Positions 6,681 through 20,850 of a DNA stretch of 64,000 nucleotides are shown here, piece after piece (positions within the stretch are counted from its first letter, which is position 1; each line of letters begins with the position of its first letter). The translations under genes were made by a program, and so were the position numbers. The notes below the pieces were generated by a model that saw only the letters and a list, made by a program, of their open reading frames with translations, was not told the origin of the DNA and ran no database searches. This DNA is from Fimbriosthenelais zetlandica (lineage: Eukaryota): positions 14,260,001 through 14,324,000 of the forward strand of contig OZ365114.1 in NCBI GenBank assembly GCA_977030845.1, in the 5' to 3' direction.

Positions 6681-8600
6681 TTTATGGCCACTCCTTGTGA
6701 TAAAAACCTGGTTAGAACTTGTTTATTCACCGTTTAGCAGCCGCTTCTTCCCTTCATTTAAGGTGAGTCTAACTAAACAAATGATTGATATGTGTAGTTA
6801 GTGCTTTTGTGTAGTAACGTTACCGTATTAGACTTATAAGTTATATATATCTGTTGTTTAAAGCCGAGAAACCTCGGTGCTGTTGCCGTGTTGGGAATGT
6901 CATGCCACATGTGTCTATACTATAGTCTATAGACTATACCTAGTACATGTAGTACTAATTGTCATACCTTACATTACTCATTAGGCTTGGCCTGCCATCG
7001 GCTATCATCCTCCGTCACAGTTTTCCCCTAAACTGCCATGGCCACCGCTGTCTTGCAAGTCTGTGTATGTGACAAACGTTTTCGTGTTTTATCAATTGAT
7101 CATTTATCAATGTCTTCTCCATTATCATGACATAAAATTATTTAATGAGTTTGACGTGACATGATGATGACATGGCATTGGGAAGGGTGTTCTGGTACCC
7201 GTAACAATGCATTCAGAGATGTAATATTAGTTAGCTAGACTAGCAGATATATGGGAAGTAGGCCTAATCCATTGCCATATATACTGTAATAGAGAAATAG
7301 GTTATTGTTCATCGTTCTTTAAAAAAAAAAACTTTTGTCGGATTTTATTGGTGGATATATAAATATCTGTGTAAACGTAATTTTTTTCAAATCTAGACAT
7401 GAAAAAACTGACAAAAAGCCTGTGTCTTTAGTACGGTAGGTGATAATCGTGATATCCATGACGGTTTAGTACGGTATCAATATAAGACAAAATTAAAATT
7501 CTGGCACTGTAGAATATTATACATCTTAAATCAAATACATGTCGTCAGTGATTAATTGTCTGAATTTAAAATTGAGCTTTTATTCATTCCATTTTCAGGT
7601 GTCTCATTGGCTTCCTGTCAGAAACCTGGACTTGGGGGCTGCGGCTTGCCCTACGGCCCTGGGTCTCGGGGTCTGAGAACGTTTCCAAAGAAATTCTAGG
7701 GCTGAGAATCGATGCCCAACTCTGTCCACTCACATCTAGCTGATGTCAATCACTTCGTGGAGTTTCAGCTTCCAGGCAAACTGCATGCATGGTGAGCTTC
7801 CTTCAGAAATATTTCAATTACATTTATGTGCTATCTTAGAATACTTTTCTGTTGGCGGAATTCCTTTTTGAATTATAAAAATTAACATATTCTTTATTCT
7901 TTCTTTTCAGGCTATATATGCAGTCTACTCACTTGAGGCTACCCCATTCATTTATAGAATTGACAGCTTGAAGACAGACTCGTTATTGAAGGTGAGCATC
8001 CTTATAATAAACCTTGCAATACAATTTCTCTGTCAGTTAATGGATTAAGCCCTTTGCATAATTAAATGAAGAGGATTGTTTCTGTTCTGGGAGGGAGATA
8101 GCTGTAGAAATGGGCGAATTAGAGGGGAGGGTGTGGGTGGGTTCGTGTGAATCGATCATTTATATTGTACATGTAATTTAGAATTGAGGACAATCAAGGT
8201 GTTATCAATCTTTACAATTTTTTATCTTCAAAATTAGCATTCAACTATCGTTTAGAATTAGATTTCCATATTACTGATGGGACATATTTAATTTACATTG
8301 CAATTATGTCATCTATCGACCCTAAACAGATTGCTGAATTATTACTCTATATGTTTTTATTCATTCTATATTTCCAGGTGCCCAGTTGACTTCCTGTAAG
8401 CAGCGGTGAAGAAACCTGGACCTGGGGACTGCGGCTTGTCCTACGGCCCTCGGTCTGGGGGTCTGAGACCGTATGAAGAGATGCCCTTTTTATCTACCGA
8501 ACACCAGACGAAGTGACGTAACGTCTACGACGGTTACAAGCATTTAGTCAGTTTAGTTAGCCCACACAAGGTCAAAGACAGGTTCTTGAAATTAGTATTT
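6670..8600 (+). ncRNA. Putative spliced lncRNA: exons ~6670-6762, 7599-7791, 7911-7991, 8378-(3' end uncertain)
   Basis: Donors GTGAGT/GTGAGC/GTGAGC and pyrimidine-rich acceptors (attttcag, ttcttttcag, tttccag); no long ORF when all four exons are joined. Confidence 0.5.
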
Positions 8601-8679: not shown

Positions 8680-10060
8680 CTCTGAAGAAGTCAGCGATTA
8701 TTATTTTAGATTAAGTATTAATTTAATTCATTCTTGTTGACATCAGAGTGTTGGAGTTTCGGAATTTAATGTTGACAGTTAAGACAGTGGAAACTGGAAT
8801 TTCCAAAGTAATTACTATATGGAAGTAGACCTATTATCATATGTTATATTTATTTGATATTCAAAGTTAGACAGCAGAGCCTTTGATGTGCAAAGTCATT
8901 ATTTAGGTTTATTATTATAGGTTATATTTATTGATAATTGATTATTGCATAATTGAGTGAAGCTTTGCCAGGCACAGTCATTATTTAGATTTAGATTATA
9001 TTTTATTTAATATCAAATTAGTTAATGTCAGAGAGTTGTAGCTTTGACATACACAGTAATTATTTTAGATTAATTGTCATAGACTATTGATTTAATCAAG
9101 ATTTGGTTTATGTCACAGATTTTAATTAATTTAAAATTTGGAGTTCATAGTTTACGGTTAGTCAGCGCAAAGTAATTATTTACATCGGTTATATTTACTT
9201 CATTATTTTAATATGAGATTTGTTTAAAGTTAGACAGTAGAAACTTGTATATATGGAAACTAATTATCATAGATTATACATATTTACTTCAGATTTGTTT
9301 AATCATAGGTAACTTTGGTGAAATGAGTTTCAAATCACAGATATTTTTTTGATAAGTGACTTTTCGAAAACCAAAAATTTAAATCAAATTTTACACAAGC
9401 CGTCAAGCAGAATATAAGGACATGTTATAGGTCATTTTGTTTGGATACTTGATTTATAGTTAGCCCATTTTCGACCCGGAGAGACATGCGACTCATTTCA
9501 CCAAAATTAGATCACATTATTTATTTCAAGTATGTTTGATACACATATCAAATAATGTCACTTATCTGGATGTTAGATTGCTGATTGTAATGTCAAAAAT
9601 GGTGGCCCCCCGCCTCTCTCCCTCTCCCCTTCCCATATCCCTTCCATCTCCCTCTCACTACCGGTATCTTCTCTTTTCCTTCTGTTAATATTTATAGAGT
9701 TATAGTTTCAAAATTTAAAGTTCATAGTTTAAATTTAGACAGTGGAAACTGGGATTTCTAAAGTAATTATTTTATAGAAGTAGACCTATTATCTTATGTT
9801 ATATTTATTTGATATTTAATGTTAGATAGAGACTTTGATGTGCAAAGTAATTACTTAGATTTATTATCATAGGTTATATTTACTTGATAATTGAATATTG
9901 ATTTGTTAATGTCAGAGAATTTACATCAGCATTTCATCGTTTAAAGTTAGATAGCGTGAAGTAATTATTAACATAGGTTATAATATTATACTTCATAATA
10001 TTTATATGAAATTTGTTTAGAGTTAGACAGTGGAAACTTGTATTATGGAAAGTAATTACT
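8680..10060. repeat. Degenerate AT-rich tandem array, ~11 units of ~80-115 bp, interrupted at ~9311-9680
   Basis: Recurrent anchors aaagtaattat, ataggttatattt and aagttagacagtggaaact; ~9730-9890 is a close direct copy of ~8780-8940. Confidence 0.8.
9311..9508. mobile_element. MITE-like insertion inside the AT-rich array
   Basis: aactttggtgaaatgagt (9311-9328) is inverted against actcatttcaccaaaatt (9491-9508), 17/18 match. Confidence 0.55.
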
Positions 10061-11467: not shown

Positions 11468-14400
11468 TGCTATGGCTGAACAGGTGTATAACAAATTCTT
11501 ATACAAGAGGGGCAGTGACAGTATAGCACCGTTGGAAAAGAATTCACTCAGTGTCAGTGGGTTCTTATCCACCCATGGACGAGTCTTGGGCAAAATCGAC
11601 GCACAGAAATGATAATTAGGAGTTAAAGGGGTTCCTTTTCTAGGTCGTACATCTATAGGCCTACAGGCGAATGCGTAAGCGGTTGTCATACAGCAGGATC
11701 CCGTCTCAAAACGAAAATTAGCCATAAACATAAAATTCTCCTTTTGAAACGGATGAAACAAATTTTGAGACACAAATGAAACCCACAACTTTTCCAGATA
11801 TAATGGATCATATTTCAATCTCTTTTTATTATACATGAGGCAATGGGATTTAAATTGGCAAAATGATGACCATAGTAAATGACTATTCAATCTACATGAC
11901 TGTACAATGATTTTTCTCTTATCGATTTCTTCTATGATTATTTGGATTACAAAACTAGTCACAATTACGGTATCCTTTTGGGAAGGCTTTCGCAGGGAGT
12001 GACTTAAACAATCACTTCAAGAGATGATGTGCCATATGAACGTATCTACTATCTCCTGTAGGGTACATACAATGCATCATTAAATTAGCTGCTATAAGCT
12101 TGGAGACAATTTTAACTATTAAACCAAAATTCCACCAGAAATGAAACTGTTAATCATAACATTCATTCCCTCTATTTCTGAAAAACGAAAGGAAATGCAA
12201 CCAAATTGAACACGAAGACAAATACTTGGCATTTCAATTTTACAACTTCACCGTAGCATTAAATGAGCTATAATTCTTTTTTTAATTTTCACATTCTCAA
12301 GTGCAGAGCGTATATCTAATTTAAACTATTTCTTTCTATCGAGATCATACACTTTTATCAAGTGGTTTTGGTGAGACATCCTTAATCATGAACATATTAT
12401 ATGCTTCAAAAATTAAATATATATAAGTCTACCAGGACACTGTCTCAAAGAAGTTAGCCAAGTTTGAATTGATGTTAGTTGGAAAAGAAGTTAATACTAA
12501 CATCTGAATTTGTGCTTTTTGATTTGAGCAAGAGCGGCCTGATGAAAAATGAGCCAAGATGTTGACTTGTCAACGATCACATTCTCTAAGGCAGAATGAG
12601 AGCATCATTCCTTAACTTCCTCTAGAATCTATCAGTGTAGGAATAAAAGGCCAAGTCAGTTACCTATTATACTTGGACAAACTTATGACGCATCTCCATA
12701 AGATTGAGCTTCAAGGAGGAGATGGACGCGCCTAGATATATCATTATTGTGCATTTTTAAGTTCGATATGTGGATTTTTGTTCAAAATAGATGGTTCTTT
12801 CCCATGAGTAGGTCTAACATCTCAATTTTACCCCGTTCAAATTTGAATTTAAGCCTAGTCTTAATTGGATTATATAATATTGAAATATTTCCCGATTATA
12901 TAATATACTTGTGAGTTCAGTCATAGATAGACTGTAGTTGTTACGCGGTATGGCGTATCTTATATAAAAAGATCATGTCCAAAACATATTTTAAATCCAT
13001 ACAGAAAGTTTGAAATATAGAATATAGCAATCTAATGATATGACCATGTTGAAATAATGTTTCAGCCTTTACCATTCTGTTGGCATTTTCTCCCTGAAAG
13101 AATATTATATTTGATTAACCAGCCGATGTAGAATTCCATAATGGGTATTTCCTCTAGCTAAAATGTAACAGTAGAGCTATTTTCAAGCGGTACACCGATT
13201 GAGAAAATACAGCTGTTATACCTATAGCGTTTCTATAATATTAAGTTGATTATATGTATAAATTATATACATATATATAAAATGACACATATTCTGTACA
13301 AAATAATCTAAGCTAGAAACTCGATAGACAAATTCATCAAGCTGCAAAGCGGCACTCAGAAAAAAGTGAAGTAAGATCAAAAGTAGGGATTCATAATTAC
13401 AATTTCCTTCCTTCAGAGTTTGACTCCTGAAGACTTTCGACAGATAAATCCATGTCAAAACTAAAAGTAAATTTAAAGATGGGTGGATTCAAGGTGCCTC
13501 GCGGCCTGGTTATATATGTGTCCATGGGCATGGGGTGTTGTACATGTGTATGTATGAGAGAGTTGGTCAAAATACTGACCGTCTGTACAAGCAAGCTGAC
13601 CCACACTTGGCTAGTCACATAAGTTACTGGGTGAACACTGCTTGATCAAGACATGGGCAAATCCACTACTATAATGCAGAAAATATTTGGGGCGGATACC
13701 ACTAGGATCGGGTGCTACTCTACGGCAATACTGCTACGGGATGAACTAGAAAAATATCTCTTATACAGCAAACAGGCACGCGTGTTCACACTCCAATTTA
13801 AAGCTTTGGATCTCAGCAGCTGACAAAAATAATTCATAGCATCCTATACACCTACTAAAAGAGTGTGACTGGACACAGTGAAAAAACACAAACCCATCTG
13901 ATTGCGTAATAGCATAGATTAGTTTACATCAAATTGAGCATTAGATCTAACTTCTAATTTCTCACAATGAATGAAACAATGAAACAATTAAAACTATGTC
14001 TCCAATTAAATAAGGGATGTTAGCAGAACACAATTAAAGCGAAAGTGGAATTGCTTTGGTTTGTGATCTAGATATTTGAATTATTGAAATTAATTATTGA
14101 ATTTATTAAATTTAAGAATATGTGCCTATTGCAATTAGTGAAATCAATATAGATCAATGAAAACAATCTGAATTGGTCCGAGATACTAATGTCGCCTATA
14201 AATTTTTGCCACAATAATCAGGTCTCTGTACGTCTCTATATCAGAATATTTAGAAATGTTATGGCAATACCATTACCACATCATGTCTGAGTTAAACAAT
14301 TCCTTAGATTTCCTTCAATTTAAGAAGAACTGATTTTGTTACTTGGAGTCTTGTGACATAACCTCTCTTCTACAAGAAATTATCAAGTGCACACCAATCT

Positions 14401-15565: not shown

Positions 15566-16374
15566 TCATAAGTCTGTTGTAATATGAATTTTCCGTTCAG
15601 TCATTCGCTCCCTGTCTCTGGAGCCTGAACTGATCTCTTGGTACACATGTTCCCTACGTTGCCAAAAGTTGGAGTCAACATGGTGGTCACTAATGTGAAC
15701 CATGCCATGTGGATTGTTCACTGACATAATCTCTGACTCCACAATCTCCGTGGCCACACCAGGAGAAGTGACTCTCATACGAGTCATACTTTCAGTACAG
15801 ACACGTTCATAGTTCGGGTCAAACTCCATGGTGGTGGTGGTAGGAAGAACCACCTCAGGGAACTGGTTATCTATAATGTCATCATAGTTTGGGTCTGGTA
15901 TTTGTACGTCACTAGGTATGGTTTGGTAATGTGGGTCCCTGCTGTCATCTTCCTCCAGCTGACTAACATTGTGACTGAGTGGGGAGGTGACAGCAGCAGT
16001 GCTGGGTCCTGGGTTGTTGTTCATGGGTTGTTGTCGGACTTTAGGCCGGGCTCCCATTCCCAGGTAGGACGCGGCAGATCCTGGGAAGACCTGGGTGAAG
16101 TGCTGGGGTCGGCGCGGTTTGTTCACCTGGGCGTACATCTGGTCGCCGGCGCTGCCGTTGGGTAGGATGGGGCCGTTTTCGTTGACGTCGGTAGGGACGC
16201 AGACTGTGTTACGGTTCCGCCGGCCCTTGTCAACCACAGCGTAGACCGGCTGGCTGCCATCGCCCTCCTCACCCGGACTCATCGTACGAGGCGTACTCGA
16301 CAATGTAGAATACGCACTCTGAGGACGCGTCCTCCTAATAATGGAATAACCGGGGTCCGGGATGTCCTCCTCAT
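15566..16374 (-). CDS. Adaptor terminal coding exon 7 (809 nt incl. stop), 9 tyrosines, ends KIHITTDL
   Basis: Acceptor attgcctttcag; matches ORF 15566..16399; phase 1 start. Confidence 0.92.
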
Positions 16375-19300
16375 CTGAAAGGCAATAGATTATAACCACT
16401 CAAGTCATGTAGTCTGAATAGATTATAACCACTCAAGTCATGTAGTCTGAATAGATTATAACCACTCAAGTCATGTCGTCTGAATATATTATAACCACTC
16501 AAGTCATCTAGTGTGAATAATTTTAACCACTCAATTAATCTTGTCTGAATAGTTTTAACCACTCAAGTCATCTTTTCTGAATAGTTTTTTACCACTCAAG
16601 TCATCTAGAAAAACGTTGAAGTAAAACTTACTTTTAGGAATGGAGAGTTGTTTGAGGATGTCTACCGGGGGCGGGGTGGGGGCAGGGACCTCCCTGATGT
16701 TACTCACATCACCCACTTTGGCATACATTGAACTCCGCGTGGAATTCTCTCCAGAACCCGAGGCAATCTCAGCATATAGATCAGAGGTGAGACTGTTACG
16801 ATCCGAGGTGAGGGAGCCGAGACCCTGATTAGCTGGTGACTACAAGAGCAATGAAATAATTAAATTAGAGCAATAAAGGTAGACCCAAAGACCCAAAGAA
16901 AAGTAGCAAAGAAAAGTACCATAACTTTTAGACACGTGTTCAGAATGCATTACATTTCAGGGATTACCCAAAGACCAATCTGGGAAATCGCTGAATCATG
17001 CAGGAAAAGGCAATTGTAATGGGAACCATTCAATGACTCAAACGGCAAAATATCTAGATCATGACCTTAACAATTCAACTTTCACTTTCGTTTTTGAGGT
17101 ACAGTGCACCCTCGCTATACCGCCACCTTTGGTACCTAGCCAAAAGTGGCGGTATAGCGAGGGTGGCGGTATAGCGAAATGGCAAATCTCTTACGTAATA
17201 CATTGTACATGTATGCATGTTAGTAGGCCTACATGTATAATAATTTAAAGTAAAATATATTAACTCGCATAGCCTTTAATTTGTAAATTGAAAAGAATGA
17301 TCTTTCCAAATGTAGAATATGCGTCTAAATCTAAAAAATAGAGAAAATAGTACCAATATTAAACCTTGGAGATGTGGTTTTAGGAAATTGGGGCTCATCA
17401 ATTAAACAATTTAAAGCAAGTTCCTGAATGATATGGTTTCAAATATTGTTTAAATATTGTTTCAAATCTCTACATATCTATCGTTAACAGAACTGAGTTT
17501 AATATAATTATGGTGAATGACCAAAGCATGTTTTTAAACAAAATGATATTTCTTTAATTCCTAAATTCTTTGAATTCTTATTTGTTTGATTTTGTGTAAA
17601 TTTGTATGGAGAATTAGAGCGCCAAAATGAATGAATATTGGATTATTCCTAGCTAGTTTTAAAATACTATTTGTAGAATTAGAATAACATAAAACATTTG
17701 TCATCATTTTAATCATTAGTGATTATGTCTTAGTAACTCATGGCTATAATTATCTGGTGATCTTTAACTGCCGTCTAAAAATGATATCAAGTGAGGCTTG
17801 TCTCGATTAATGAAAGGGTGTTGGTACAGAGACGCCGCCACATGTTTGTTTAGCAATAGCCCGCCCCTTAATCTCTTAGCTTGTTGTAACAAGCCAGGTG
17901 GAAAATCGTCACCAGTGGCGGTATAACGAGGTGAGGAGGACTTTTCGTCCCCCAAATAACATGGCGGATGGCGGAAAGCGAGGGTGGCGCTTTATCGAGG
18001 GAAATAACATGGGCGGAAATCCGTTCTGGGTAAAAGCATGGCGGTAAGCGAGGGTGGCGTTATATCGAGGGGCGGTATAGCGAGGGTGCACTGTATTGCT
18101 ATAAACCACAGGACCTAAACTTTGCTATCAATCATTTGATCTTAAAAATAATGCGTGGGTTCCAAGGGCAATGTCTTGCGTTCAATGTAATCAGCTCAAA
18201 GTTAAGATTTAGTTGGGAAACTTACAGTTATTTGGTCATAGTTCACTGACTCATACGTGGCATCGTGAGGCAGCGGTTGTTTTAAAGCAAGTTCTGCAGC
18301 TTGTCGTTGTCGGAGGTTGGCAAGAGATTCCCTGGCTGTCACGCTGGAGTAGGGCGGTTCACGCTTACCTGAATCAGTCAACAGTTCACATCACAATACA
18401 GAACACACGGGCAGATATACATTTTTTCATCAATTTTCTTCAATGTTTTTCAGTTTAATTACAACAGAGCTTCACTGGTTCCAAGTTTTTTTCAGGCCGT
18501 TATTTCAGGTGACCAAAACATCAAACCTGTAGAAATGGTAGCCCTACCAAGAACAATATGGCCCCTAAATAGAGCCCTTACCTTCATCCCACAAGACTGC
18601 ATATCGCAATGCTTATCACACCTGACCACTTAACCCGTTACTAACTTATGAATGAACCTTATATGGATATACATTACCTGTGGGTTCTGGTCCGTCCATG
18701 ACATCATCCAGCACTTGGTCGTCCTCACTACCACCCCCCACCATGACATCAGTGAGTGGGTGGCCGCCGCTCGCCTCCTCCCCTGAGCTACTCGTCCTGT
18801 TACGGGGAGGTAAACTAGGACTACTGGCTGTCTGTGGAGACTGATTCCCCCCTCCCCCTCCTCCTTCCCCAGCTCCCCCTCCCCCACCACCCCCTCCTAT
18901 AGCACCAGGAGCAGTGAGGGTTGAGCTAGTCTCAGAGTAAGTAAAATGTTTATCAGGCACTGGGGGTGGCGGTATAGAAGCGTAGCTGTCATTTAGTGTG
19001 TCCGTACTGGCACTAGACTGTAGCTCCTGTAACCTTTGTAAAGTCGTCAGTTTTCTGGGGTTTGTCTTGTTCTTTTCCTCAATATGAGCATAGTCGGCGT
19101 TACCAATGCCTTCCACAGTGGCGTACGGGTTAGAGTTCTTCAAAGCGGGGTAGCCGGTGTCACTGGTGTCGTCTTTGACACCGGCGTATGTGGAGTCACT
19201 ACCGGTGTCACCGACCTTCTCGTAGAGGTTGGGGGTGTGGTGGGTGACAGCAGTGACAGTGTTGATGGGGGGTGGACTGACAGCGTCGTCAGGGGTGTGT

Positions 19301-20483
19301 TGGTGTCGTCCCCGGCCTCGGATGATGTCGTAATGACCCTCGTCATCATCCTCGTCGTCTGTTTGCATCACGCCTCGTGAGTCACCTGGTATCTCAGGTA
19401 ACGCTCGCTGATCATGGCTCCTGGAATATTAGGAAAGTATCGGTATGAGTAAAACGGACCAGAAAAGATGTGATTGACATCATTTAGTTTTAGAATACCG
19501 AGACCGTAGCTTTCAGAAATATGGAGAATTAATATCAAAACACTGTACGACATATGATTAAGATTATATATATATCTAATGTTTATTTTTTATGAGAATA
19601 AGTAAGACAGTCTTCATCACAGGGGCATAAGTTGTACCAATGGAATGTTGAGAATCATCAACGAACATTTTTTAAAAGGGAAAACATACTTAGGTCGTCC
19701 ATTGTCAGGACCATCCTTGACTAAGACGGCCGAGCCGTTGCTGTGACGACTGTCTCGCTGAGTAACGGTCACTTTTATTTCTGTCTCCTCAACTGGGCCG
19801 TTAACCTAGAACAGGAAATTACTGGCATTTATATGACTGTCCAAGGAGAAAAATGACATGATGATAAATGGAAAATGGATGATAAAATGGTGGTTTCTCA
19901 GTTAACTCACCGAATTAGTGTTCACATGAGACTTTCTGTCCACCACTGGCGTAACTTCCTTTAACATAGGTTCACCTCTCTCCCTGCAACAAAAGATTCT
20001 CTTAGTAAGAATATTGGTGATATCATAATAAATGTCTAGTCTTGGCATTTATAAAATACATTTAATTTTGTAATATGAAAATCTGATATTGTGATAGAAA
20101 GTAGAGAGACTTTCAATGTGTTAACATTTAGCCTACAGCTTGTCTGTTCAGTTTGCGTCATTGGCGCCCTCTCGGGTGAACTCCTCACACTACCACTACA
20201 TTCTCTATTCTAGATATCCCTGTTAGCAGCCAGTTAGCAGCACTGGGTGGAGGATAGCAATAGCAAATGTTAGAGATCGAAATCTGAGGATGGGGTATTG
20301 TACTCACGATTTGCCCGTCTCACGACATAGACACATGGCCATGAGGATGACCATGGAGATGATAGAGAGTAGAGAACAGACGATGACCGGTGTACCGGTA
20401 CCTGACCAGTCCGCCTGGGCTGACTGACCATCACCAGCCACCAGCCGGTGTAGCAGCGCCTGGTCATTGTCCAGATGCATCAT
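15566..20483 (-). CDS. PAG1/Cbp-like single-pass transmembrane adaptor protein; 7 coding exons, 2268 nt, 755 aa
   Basis: Exons 20483-20308, 19983-19911, 19805-19690, 19420-18678, 18368-18226, 16839-16632 and 16374-15566 all have GT-AG boundaries and matching phases (2,0,2,1,0,1) with no internal stop. TM + [32 protein letters not shown] and C-terminal TTDL parallel human PAG1 motifs (recalled, no search run). The gene model is high confidence; orthology is moderate. Confidence 0.88.
16386..16605. repeat. 33-bp minisatellite (~6-7 copies) abutting the last acceptor of the adaptor gene
   Basis: Unit tagattataaccactcaagtcatgtagtctgaa; explains the periodic ORF 16371..16562. Confidence 0.9.
16632..16839 (-). 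CDS. Adaptor coding exon 6 (208 nt)
   Basis: Acceptor ttgctcttgtag, donor GTAAGT; phase 0 to 1; [69 protein letters not shown]. Confidence 0.87.
17102..18093. mobile_element. Non-autonomous Tc1/mariner (pogo/Tigger-type) MITE, 992 bp, in intron 5 of the adaptor gene
   Basis: Perfect TIR cagtgcaccctcgctataccgcc / ggcggtatagcgagggtgcactg, TA target duplication at 17100-17101 and 18094-18095, internal ggcggtatagcgag repeats, no transposase ORF. Confidence 0.9.
18226..18368 (-). CDS. Adaptor coding exon 5 (143 nt)
   Basis: Acceptor tgactgattcag, donor GTAAGT; phase 1 to 0, which bridges exon 4 to exon 6; [47 protein letters not shown]. Confidence 0.85.
18678..19420 (-). CDS. Adaptor coding exon 4 (743 nt): RxLPxxP, 8 tyrosines, PPPPVPDK, poly-Gly, PSLPPR
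   Basis: Acceptor cctaatattccag, donor GTAATG; covers most of ORF 18646..19371; phase 2 to 1. Confidence 0.9.
19690..19805 (-). CDS. Adaptor coding exon 3 (116 nt)
   Basis: Acceptor cctgttctag, donor GTATGT; phase 0 to 2; [38 protein letters not shown]. Confidence 0.8.
19911..19983 (-). CDS. Adaptor coding exon 2 (73 nt)
   Basis: Acceptor cttttgttgcag, donor GTGAGT; phase 2 to 0; [24 protein letters not shown]. Confidence 0.8.
20308..20483 (-). CDS. Adaptor coding exon 1: start codon, short ectodomain, TM helix, CxC palmitoylation motif
   Basis: Acceptor gtgtcttttcag ends at 20500 (exon starts 20499) with an in-frame TGA upstream of ATG 20483. Translation [58 protein letters not shown]; donor GTGAGT at 20307. 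Confidence 0.85.
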
Positions 20484-20671
20484 GACGCGTACAGTTCATC
20501 TGAAAAGACACAAGTGAATAATTGGTCAAAAAGTGTGACAATGAGTAAGATAAAAACAGGGGGAAAGAATCAGTCAAAAGGTGTGACAAGGCAAGGCCCA
20601 AATGTCATGGTCAAACAAGGGGAATTCATGAAGGTTAGGCCTATATGTGGGAAAGGATCAGCCAAAATGGT

Positions 20672-20850
20672 CAAATGAGAGGAAGAATCAGTCAAGACCA
20701 AATGAGAGGAAGAATCAGTCAAGACCAAATGAGGGGAAGAATCAGTCAAGATCAGATGAGGGGAAGAATCAGTCAAGATCAGATGGGGGTAAGAATCAGT
20801 CAATGTCAAATCAAGGGAAGAATCAGTCAAGAAGGTCCGATGAGGGGAAA
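20672..20850. repeat. 27-bp minisatellite (~6-7 copies)
   Basis: Unit atgaggggaagaatcagtcaagatcag; explains the periodic ORFs at 20570-20904. Confidence 0.9.

Follow-up and report, generated by a model that had tools for sequence, protein, structure and literature searches.

A tyrosine-rich single-pass adaptor gene in Fimbriosthenelais zetlandica, a probable distant invertebrate homologue of vertebrate PAG1/Cbp

We analysed a stretch of 64,000 nt from Fimbriosthenelais zetlandica (assembly GCA_977030845.1, contig OZ365114.1, positions 14,260,001-14,324,000 of the forward strand), referred to below as the window and numbered from its first letter. The subject is a gene on its minus strand at 15566-20483, which encodes a single-pass membrane protein that is probably a distant relative of the vertebrate adaptor PAG1/Cbp. 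A preliminary description had spliced a 755-aa protein from this locus by hand; a model rebuilt by script gave the same product from seven exons, joined into a 2268-nt uninterrupted frame across six introns that all read GT...AG. Exon 1 (20308-20483) carries the start ATG, a 32-aa ectodomain, a transmembrane helix and C-L-C-R-E, and is followed by the short exons 2 (19911-19983, 73 nt) and 3 (19690-19805, 116 nt). Exon 4 (18678-19420) encodes the motif RALPEIP, an acidic run, seven conserved YxxV/I/L sites, PPPPVPDK, a poly-glycine run and PSLPPR, and exon 5 (18226-18368) contains Y376 in YSSV. DLYAEI, MYAKV and APTPPP lie in exon 6 (16632-16839), while exon 7 (15566-16374), for which a 16-sequence alignment was available, supplies three DPxY sites, the NPHGMVHI block, ITTDL and the stop codon; all exons are on the minus strand. 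No other recognisable gene was found in the 64-kb window.

The model was compared with eight loci (L001-L008), the contigs behind the relatives of exon 7 described below; L001 and L006 are two copies from one sample, and L005 comes without the upstream part. All seven exons were recovered from L001 in the same order as in the window and at 50-90% identity (69% for exon 2, 63% for exon 3, 89% for exon 5 and 78% for exon 6), and most of them from L002, L003 and L007, with exons 2 and 3 present in L003 too and exon 2 not found in L002. Between the window and L001, the proportion of non-synonymous differences (pN) was 0.25 and that of synonymous differences (pS) 0.80, a level at which synonymous sites are saturated. 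Protein similarity to L001, L002 and L003 stops at the predicted exon borders, though open frames continue beyond them; at one such border, ...NYDQIT is followed by a GT donor in the window and in L001 alike. Look-ups of sequencing runs, for RNA over the whole gene and for any kind over exon 7, listed none, and the splice junctions thus rest on comparative evidence, which we grade as strong. These data bear directly on the possibility that the model is an artefact or a pseudogene, its exons being chance open reading frames (ORFs) or parts of separate transcripts. Such an origin is at odds with seven exons that are collinear in another species and show pN far below pS in each, with borders at which GT/AG and the end of conservation coincide, with a frame free of breaks, and with full-length hemichordate RefSeq models that hold the same series of motifs within one protein. 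We regard this explanation as close to refuted; the comparisons instead indicate that the seven-exon gene is real and under selective maintenance.

Some details of gene structure differ between loci. Exons 2 and 3 together measure 189 nt (19690-19983), so that joint skipping would preserve the frame, and in L002 (7787-8390) neither has a counterpart, the gap between exons 1 and 4 being only ~600 bp; the two exons may be optional or confined to certain lineages. Exon 6 is represented in L003 by two pieces ~1.1 kb apart (8034-8207 and 9364-9471), owing to an additional intron or else to a fault in the assembly. Past the stop codon, the coding strand has its first AATAAA at 14102-14107 (minus strand), ~1.46 kb away, a distance that suggests a long 3' untranslated region (UTR).

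The N-terminus had been read as a short ectodomain without a signal peptide, followed by one helix and C-L-C-R, and this layout was found again in the rebuilt protein and in L001 and L002. Residues 1-32 have no hydrophobic signal-like core, and residues 33-51 (20331-20387, minus strand) form the sole hydrophobic segment of the protein (Kyte-Doolittle mean over 19 residues, 2.7), a transmembrane helix of the signal-anchor kind with its N-terminus outside. This orientation was deduced from the positive-inside rule: the helix has an acidic stretch on its N-terminal side, and R and K come after it. Directly after the helix, C51-L-C53 (20325-20333, minus strand), which R-E follows, forms a candidate palmitoylation site, and the pattern C-x-C-R-[ED] is kept in L001 and L002. 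Exon 1 of L001 begins with MMHLD as in the window and retains the helix and C-A-C-R-E; that of L002 encodes a shorter ectodomain, then the helix and C-A-C-R-D. Conservation starts at ATGATG. Upstream of it, sequence inspection revealed a pyrimidine tract and CAG, a likely 5' UTR acceptor, and an in-frame TGA lies between this putative acceptor and the ATG, 15 nt upstream of the latter, so that no upstream exon can lengthen the N-terminus via the nearest acceptor. From this arrangement we take the start codon to be secure. A short out-of-frame upstream ORF (20464-20499, minus strand) follows the putative acceptor and overlaps the main ATG. It has 11 codons in the window and 7 in L001 (L001 1772-1797), where the layout is the same, and in both it ends across the main start codon; this shared element could exert conserved translational control.

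The cytoplasmic tail comprises ~700 aa, is acidic (pI 5.0) and is rich in S, P, G, T and D. It holds all 22 tyrosines of the protein, 21 of which have V, I, L or M at +3, an enrichment with a binomial probability of 4e-15 given 18% such residues in the tail. Ten tyrosines belong to the class Y[AST]x[VIM] and six to Y[ED]x[IV]. An alignment of four species shows 18 of the 22 to be preserved in all three orthologues, and Y283, the only tyrosine outside the YxxPhi pattern, is also the only one that has no counterpart in any orthologue. No Pfam domain was detected in the window protein when every exon was scanned, whole or trimmed, at E up to 10. AlphaFold2 models of exons 4 and 7, built with alignments of relatives, were disordered and almost devoid of secondary structure (mean predicted local distance difference test 50 and 52, predicted template modelling score 0.11 and 0.14, respectively), in keeping with the lack of a folded domain noted at the outset. 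A poly-glycine run (G8-A-G-E-G6, aa 297-313; 18847-18897 in exon 4) occurs in the window species only and is missing from L001, L002 and L003.

The YxxPhi pattern doubles as the sorting consensus of clathrin adaptor (AP) complexes, and in a small single-pass membrane protein an array of this kind might act in membrane traffic, making the protein a cargo or a sorting receptor. Twenty-one sites, however, far exceed what sorting needs, and their surroundings (A, S, E or D at +1, acidic residues upstream, NKP or DK after V) fit the specificity of kinases and SH2 domains. They are moreover accompanied by class I and class II SH3 ligands and a PDZ ligand, and the nearest named families are all phosphotyrosine adaptors. 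We therefore consider a sorting function highly improbable. A reading as an inhibitory receptor of the immunoreceptor tyrosine-based inhibitory motif (ITIM) type was also tried and rejected, with only four loose ITIM matches and no ectodomain beyond the 32 residues mentioned above.

The docking motifs on which the preliminary description had built its case, RALPEIP, PPPPVPDK, MYAQVNKP and the C-terminal ITTDL, are all present in the rebuilt protein, and across the orthologues both proline motifs, YxxVNKP, a terminal [ST]-x-L and C-x-C-R-[ED] recur. RALPEIP (aa 127-133; 19387-19407, this and the following motifs on the minus strand) conforms to the class I SH3-ligand consensus RxxPxxP, and five orthologues keep its L, P, I and P without change. 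PPPPVPDK (aa 272-279; 18949-18972) conforms to the class II consensus PxxPxK, is kept in L001, L002 and L003 and takes the form APPVPxK in hemichordates. SYAS[IV]PPPPVPDK, GARPKV and PGVATEI belong to the conserved non-tyrosine elements of the family, as does SPSLPPRN, which covers PSLPPR at aa 323-328. The C-terminal block NPHGMVHI..H...FWQRxEHVYQEI (aa 707-734; 15632-15715) provides the strongest conservation link to the hemichordate proteins, and human PAG1 has a shorter look-alike of it, GHHGLVPKENDYESIS. ITTDL (15569-15583) is by sequence a candidate class I PDZ ligand ([ST]-x-L), and [ST]-x-L terminates 11 of the 13 non-hemichordate relatives.

Two tyrosines of the window protein are candidate Csk sites. 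Y567 in MYAQVNKP (aa 566-573; 16109-16138) appears to be the best candidate for docking of the Csk SH2 domain, with Y, V, N and K kept family-wide. Y376 lies in YSSV, literally the Csk-SH2 motif of PAG1, and the hemichordate counterpart of its exon reads EPSYSEVSVRESI. When the PDB was searched with the family profile A1, the only match was the EPIYA segment IYAKVNKKK of CagA (3iec_E, E 0.37); the exon 7 sequence gave no matches, and profile A3 returned only a chance match to eL27. Phosphorylated EPIYA-A or EPIYA-B of CagA binds the Csk SH2 domain (PMC3593179), and Y567 as a Csk site gains some support from this match because IYAKVNKKK is of the Csk-SH2-binding EPIYA type.

When 1.8 billion representative proteins were searched with exon 7 by phmmer, 17 matches emerged: one hemichordate protein and 16 proteins of ORF size from assemblies without annotation, nearly all of these 16 resembling exon 7. 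The family is rare in public protein sets: its only annotated full-length relatives are three hemichordate proteins, from Glandiceps talaboti (XP_077985369.1), Ptychodera flava ('IWS1 homolog A-like' X2) and Saccoglossus kowalevskii (LOC102808639 X2). Their C-terminal block matched that of the window in BLASTP at E 1e-7 to 2e-9, and in their tails the motifs are arranged collinearly with those of the window protein. RRLPQPPP, an acidic stretch containing tyrosines, APPVPxK and EPSYSEVSVRESI..KERE come first, followed in the same order by TYxxV, LYASI, YA[KQ]VNKPKR, GYQAI and MVHI..HKV..FW.KKDHTYQ.I. In contrast to the window protein, they possess a signal peptide and a cysteine-containing ectodomain of ~150 aa, hence type I topology, and they have a single juxtamembrane cysteine instead of two and no C-terminal PDZ ligand. 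The candidate explanation that an ectodomain exon like the hemichordate one lies hidden in the window was rejected, as tblastn gave E above 0.4 throughout. L008 is intermediate between the window and hemichordate types, reading RRLPELPP, PPPVPAKNF and NPHGLVHIS...LWQRPEHIYQEL. In the ESM Atlas, unnamed arthropod clusters of ~740 aa neighbour the hemichordate tail (score 0.91). Two further relatives, P0004 and P0005 (L005 96-1157), have DPY[SA][KR][IV]K-type repeats inserted in the exon 7 region, with DPYSRVKD occurring several times, which multiplies the tyrosine sites.

Domain-based annotation had been expected to pass over such a protein, and it does: the window protein is Pfam-negative, and the hemichordate relatives are either 'uncharacterized' or misnamed. 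The Ptychodera flava protein (P0024), publicly called 'protein IWS1 homolog A-like', has no Pfam match, and its name looks like an automatic misnomer, probably caused by an acidic, serine-rich composition.

We then set the protein against vertebrate PAG1. PAG1 is a type III protein with a 16-aa ectodomain, a transmembrane segment at 17-36, a palmitoylated CSSC, ten tyrosines (nine of them YxxV/L/I), proline-rich stretches at 131-138 and 257-263 and a pI of 4.4 (PMC2213442). Its partners include the SH3 domain of Fyn, which binds the first proline region (PMC3167820), and Csk and the PDZ domain of EBP50, which bind Y317 and the C-terminus, respectively (PMC4861716). YSSV is the Csk SH2 site of Cbp, and sites of the YEEI/V type bind Src SH2 (PMC3492796). 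For the human protein, a published peptide array of overlapping 12-mers contains RELPRIP (131-137), APPPVPVK, MYSSVNKPG and the C-terminus ITRL (PMC6277618, Table 2). The PAG1 features named in the preliminary description (short ectodomain, CxxC, RELPRIP, PPPVP, Y317 and ITRL) are therefore documented (PMC2213442, PMC4861716, PMC6277618). The Csk-binding AMYSSVNKP named there agrees with MYSSVNKPG and Y317, but the window protein offers two candidate sites for this function and not one.

Both proteins share type III topology, a short ectodomain free of a signal peptide, a dicysteine that follows the helix and precedes R-E, and an acidic tail that lacks domains and has almost every tyrosine in a YxxV/I/L context. 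Individual stretches can be paired. LCSSCDRE of PAG1 corresponds to MCLCRE of the window protein, KCHQSRELPRIPPES to a 15-aa counterpart between the juxtamembrane motif and GHYDIIRG, GPYEVLKD to GHYDIIRG itself, LYETVKE to LYEKVGD, and APPPVPVK to PPPPVPDK. Likewise, KRFSSLSYKSRE pairs with a 14-aa counterpart between PPPPVPDK and MYAQVNKPR, MYSSVNKPG with MYAQVNKPR, EPDYEAI with DPNYERV, GHHGLV with NPHGMV, DYESIS with VYQEIS, and ITRL with ITTDL. RxLPxIP, PPPVPxK, KR..[FY]SS[LV][ST], MYxxVNKP, HG[LM]V...Y[EQ][ES]IS and IT-x-x-L stand in the same order in both. The first proline motif lies at 127-133 in the window protein and at 131-138 in PAG1, and the second at 272-279 and 257-263, respectively, so that the positions agree within 4-16 residues. 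The proteins differ in that the window protein has C-x-C where PAG1 has C-x-x-C, nothing before its first proline motif that corresponds to the YEEV site at Y105 of PAG1, and a stretch from the YSSV block to the YxxVNKP site that is longer by ~170 residues.

The shared order was assessed with 15 short blocks of human PAG1, covering the end of the transmembrane segment, every tyrosine, both proline motifs, HGLV and the C-terminus. The score was that of the best collinear chain of ungapped BLOSUM62 matches, compared between the natural and permuted block orders, a control that preserves the motif content of both proteins. Among 5000 permutations, the natural order was matched by 5 for the window protein, 4 for L001, 1 for Ptychodera, 12 for Glandiceps, 36 for L003 and 67 for L002; Saccoglossus was not significant, leaving six of seven family proteins below 0.05. 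The effect persisted when the transmembrane and C-terminal blocks were dropped (14/10,000 and 1/10,000), and other settings, including a raised score threshold, gave 6-14/10,000 for the window protein. The common order of motifs claimed by the preliminary description was thereby upheld.

A second line of evidence came from the Pfam PAG model (PF15347). The match proposed as a check was not obtained with the window protein itself; it appeared in a relative. Exon 4 of L003, clearly orthologous to exon 4 of the window (E 7e-40), aligned over its residues 1-158 with positions 127-271 of the 428 in the model (E 5.5e-5, 22.9 bits), an interval that spans the first to the second proline motif, and matches from other families were far weaker. 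Exon 7 of the same locus (P0003) matched at E 0.0057 (16.2 bits), the only PAG match when the C- and N-terminal thirds of ten relatives were scanned. In the ESM Atlas, PAG/LIME1 clusters were nearest to exon 7 (scores 0.82, 0.78 and 0.77), and PAG was the best named family for exon 4 (0.72); the scores are low, and we use this proximity as a weak lead only.

Several observations weigh against descent from a common ancestor with PAG1. The score of L003 exon 4 falls below the curated gathering cut-off of 27 bits, and the PAG model gave no match at E up to 10 with any window exon, whole or trimmed, nor any match with L001, L002, L006, L007, L008 or the three hemichordate proteins. In protein sets of 1.8 and 5.8 billion entries, neither exon 7 as phmmer query nor the P0009 tail, the exon-7 alignment A1 and the mixed alignment A2 as queries of a word-indexed search (A1 and A2 at E up to 10) retrieved a vertebrate protein or an annotated full-length protein from a lophotrochozoan. 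The window protein has 755 aa and 22 tyrosines, compared with 432 aa and ten tyrosines in PAG1, and its conserved modules GARPKV, PGVATEI and FWQRxEH are absent from PAG1. As for the order test, the PAG1 blocks were picked after the similarity had been seen, the seven targets are interrelated, and the block around PAG Y227 (YASVDRNKK) has its best local match in exon 7, out of order. Finally, short SH2, SH3 and PDZ motifs can arise convergently in disordered tails.

Such convergence would mean that lophotrochozoan-type animals plus hemichordates have their own family of transmembrane multi-phosphotyrosine scaffolds, which did not derive from a PAG1 ancestor and acquired the same motif types via the same Src/Csk machinery, with the same role and the same way of working. 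This would fit the finding that only one of ~7 orthologues registers on the PAG model, below threshold, and that the family also gives weak matches to LIME1 (0.11), SCIMP (1), ITAM (0.03) and Myelin-P0_C (0.005), all of which carry tyrosine motifs. The unrelated disordered adaptors NYAP, Neogenin_C, UL135 and A36R among the ESM neighbours, the signal peptide and long ectodomain of the hemichordate relatives, which PAG1 does not have, and the modules foreign to PAG1 point the same way. Convergence accounts, however, for shared types of motif and not for their shared order or near-identical positions in the chain, and it leaves a single 158-residue alignment across both proline motifs unexplained. 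It also does not account for flanks that match beyond the motif cores, as in K-x-H-x-x-R-x-L-P-x-I-P-x-[ED]-S and KR...[FY]SS[LV][ST]. An independent origin is thus conceivable, but we judge it unlikely.

By its sequence, the gene carries the type III topology, dicysteine, two proline motifs, PDZ ligand and motif order of PAG1, and we favour, with a probability of roughly 0.6, the reading that it encodes a type III single-pass adaptor with a disordered docking tail that is a distant invertebrate homologue of PAG1/Cbp and acts as proposed below. Homology is probable but not proven because the PAG model fails to pick up the window protein, and we assigned no Pfam PAG membership because the curated score was not reached. 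Of the ancestral or convergent raft adaptor that had originally been suggested, the adaptor features and the PAG-like order hold, descent is probable, and raft targeting stays a prediction.

Repeats were noted in and near the gene. Intron 5 contains a ~1-kb element (17100-18095) with perfect 25-nt terminal inverted repeats at 17100-17124 and 18071-18095; within it, another hairpin spans 17107-17165, and 18039-18088 holds a 15-nt repeat (GGCGGTATAGCGAGG-like). From its sequence the element looks like an insertion of a terminal-inverted-repeat transposon or a miniature inverted-repeat transposable element. A tandem array of a 33-bp unit (6.9 copies, 89% match) occupies 16384-16608 in intron 6, and another of a 27-bp unit (6.0 copies, 88% match) lies upstream of exon 1 at 20671-20832.

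Given the topology, disorder and conserved motifs of the protein, palmitoylation, raft targeting and binding of Csk, Src-family kinases and a PDZ partner can be predicted, and we propose the following working model. Acylation of C51 and C53 would place the protein in ordered membrane domains, where the SH3 domain of a Src-family kinase would dock on RALPEIP or PPPPVPDK and the kinase would phosphorylate the 21 YxxV/I/L/M sites. The Csk SH2 domain would then bind phospho-Y567 in MYAQVNKP, phospho-Y376 in YSSV, or both, which would bring Csk next to the Src kinases to shut them off and thereby close a negative feedback loop. Additional SH2 proteins may join at the six Y[ED]x[IV] sites and at the remaining sites of the class Y[AST]x[VIM], and the terminal T-D-L would link the scaffold to an NHERF-type PDZ protein and hence to the cortical cytoskeleton.

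Csk acts only once it has been brought to the membrane. To our knowledge, Csk and Src kinases occur in all animals, and a dedicated membrane anchor for Csk, PAG1/Cbp, has been described only from vertebrates. In the literature searched we found no description of an invertebrate PAG/Cbp; for flies, other Csk partners are cited, namely dASPP and paxillin (PMC3492796; PMC5909926). The family reported here offers a concrete, conserved candidate for a Csk membrane anchor in lophotrochozoan-type animals and hemichordates. It renders Csk membrane recruitment outside vertebrates directly testable, with ~18 tyrosines conserved across species as a ready map for mutagenesis. It also illustrates how a disordered adaptor can evade domain-based annotation, being revealed only by the order of its motifs and one sub-threshold match to a hidden Markov model.

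If homology holds, signalling scaffolds of the transmembrane adaptor protein (TRAP) type were not invented by vertebrate immunity. One may go further and speculate, tentatively, that the family represents the ancestral bilaterian PAG/Cbp, a palmitoylated, Csk-recruiting scaffold older than vertebrates and their immune system and originally about twice as long. Under this speculation hemichordates either kept or gained their receptor-like ectodomain, which would make a receptor under ligand control, and not a passive raft adaptor, a possible ancestral form.

How the protein relates to known systems can be summarized in three comparisons. The first is with CagA of Helicobacter pylori: its EPIYA-A/B segment IYAKVNKKK is almost the same as [LMV]YA[QK]VNKP[KR] of the family, but CagA is an injected bacterial effector with no transmembrane segment, and the likeness is limited to one short motif and implies no common descent. 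Were the ancestral speculation correct, YA[KQ]VNK[PK] would be an ancient host motif for Csk that EPIYA-A copies almost letter for letter. The second is with the TRAP class, defined by a tiny ectodomain, a transmembrane segment, juxtamembrane cysteines and a tail of tyrosine motifs (PMC4861716). The window protein displays every one of these sequence features and is, on that basis, a TRAP-type multi-phosphotyrosine scaffold. LIME1 (PF15332), SCIMP (PF15050), LAT and NTAL share the features of the class, and the first two give weak Pfam or ESM signals with the window family. All four, however, are much shorter, have neither paired proline motifs nor a PDZ ligand, and produced no match better than E 0.1. 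The third is with PAG1/Cbp itself: the gene is probably a distant orthologue of a known adaptor and not the embodiment of a new principle.

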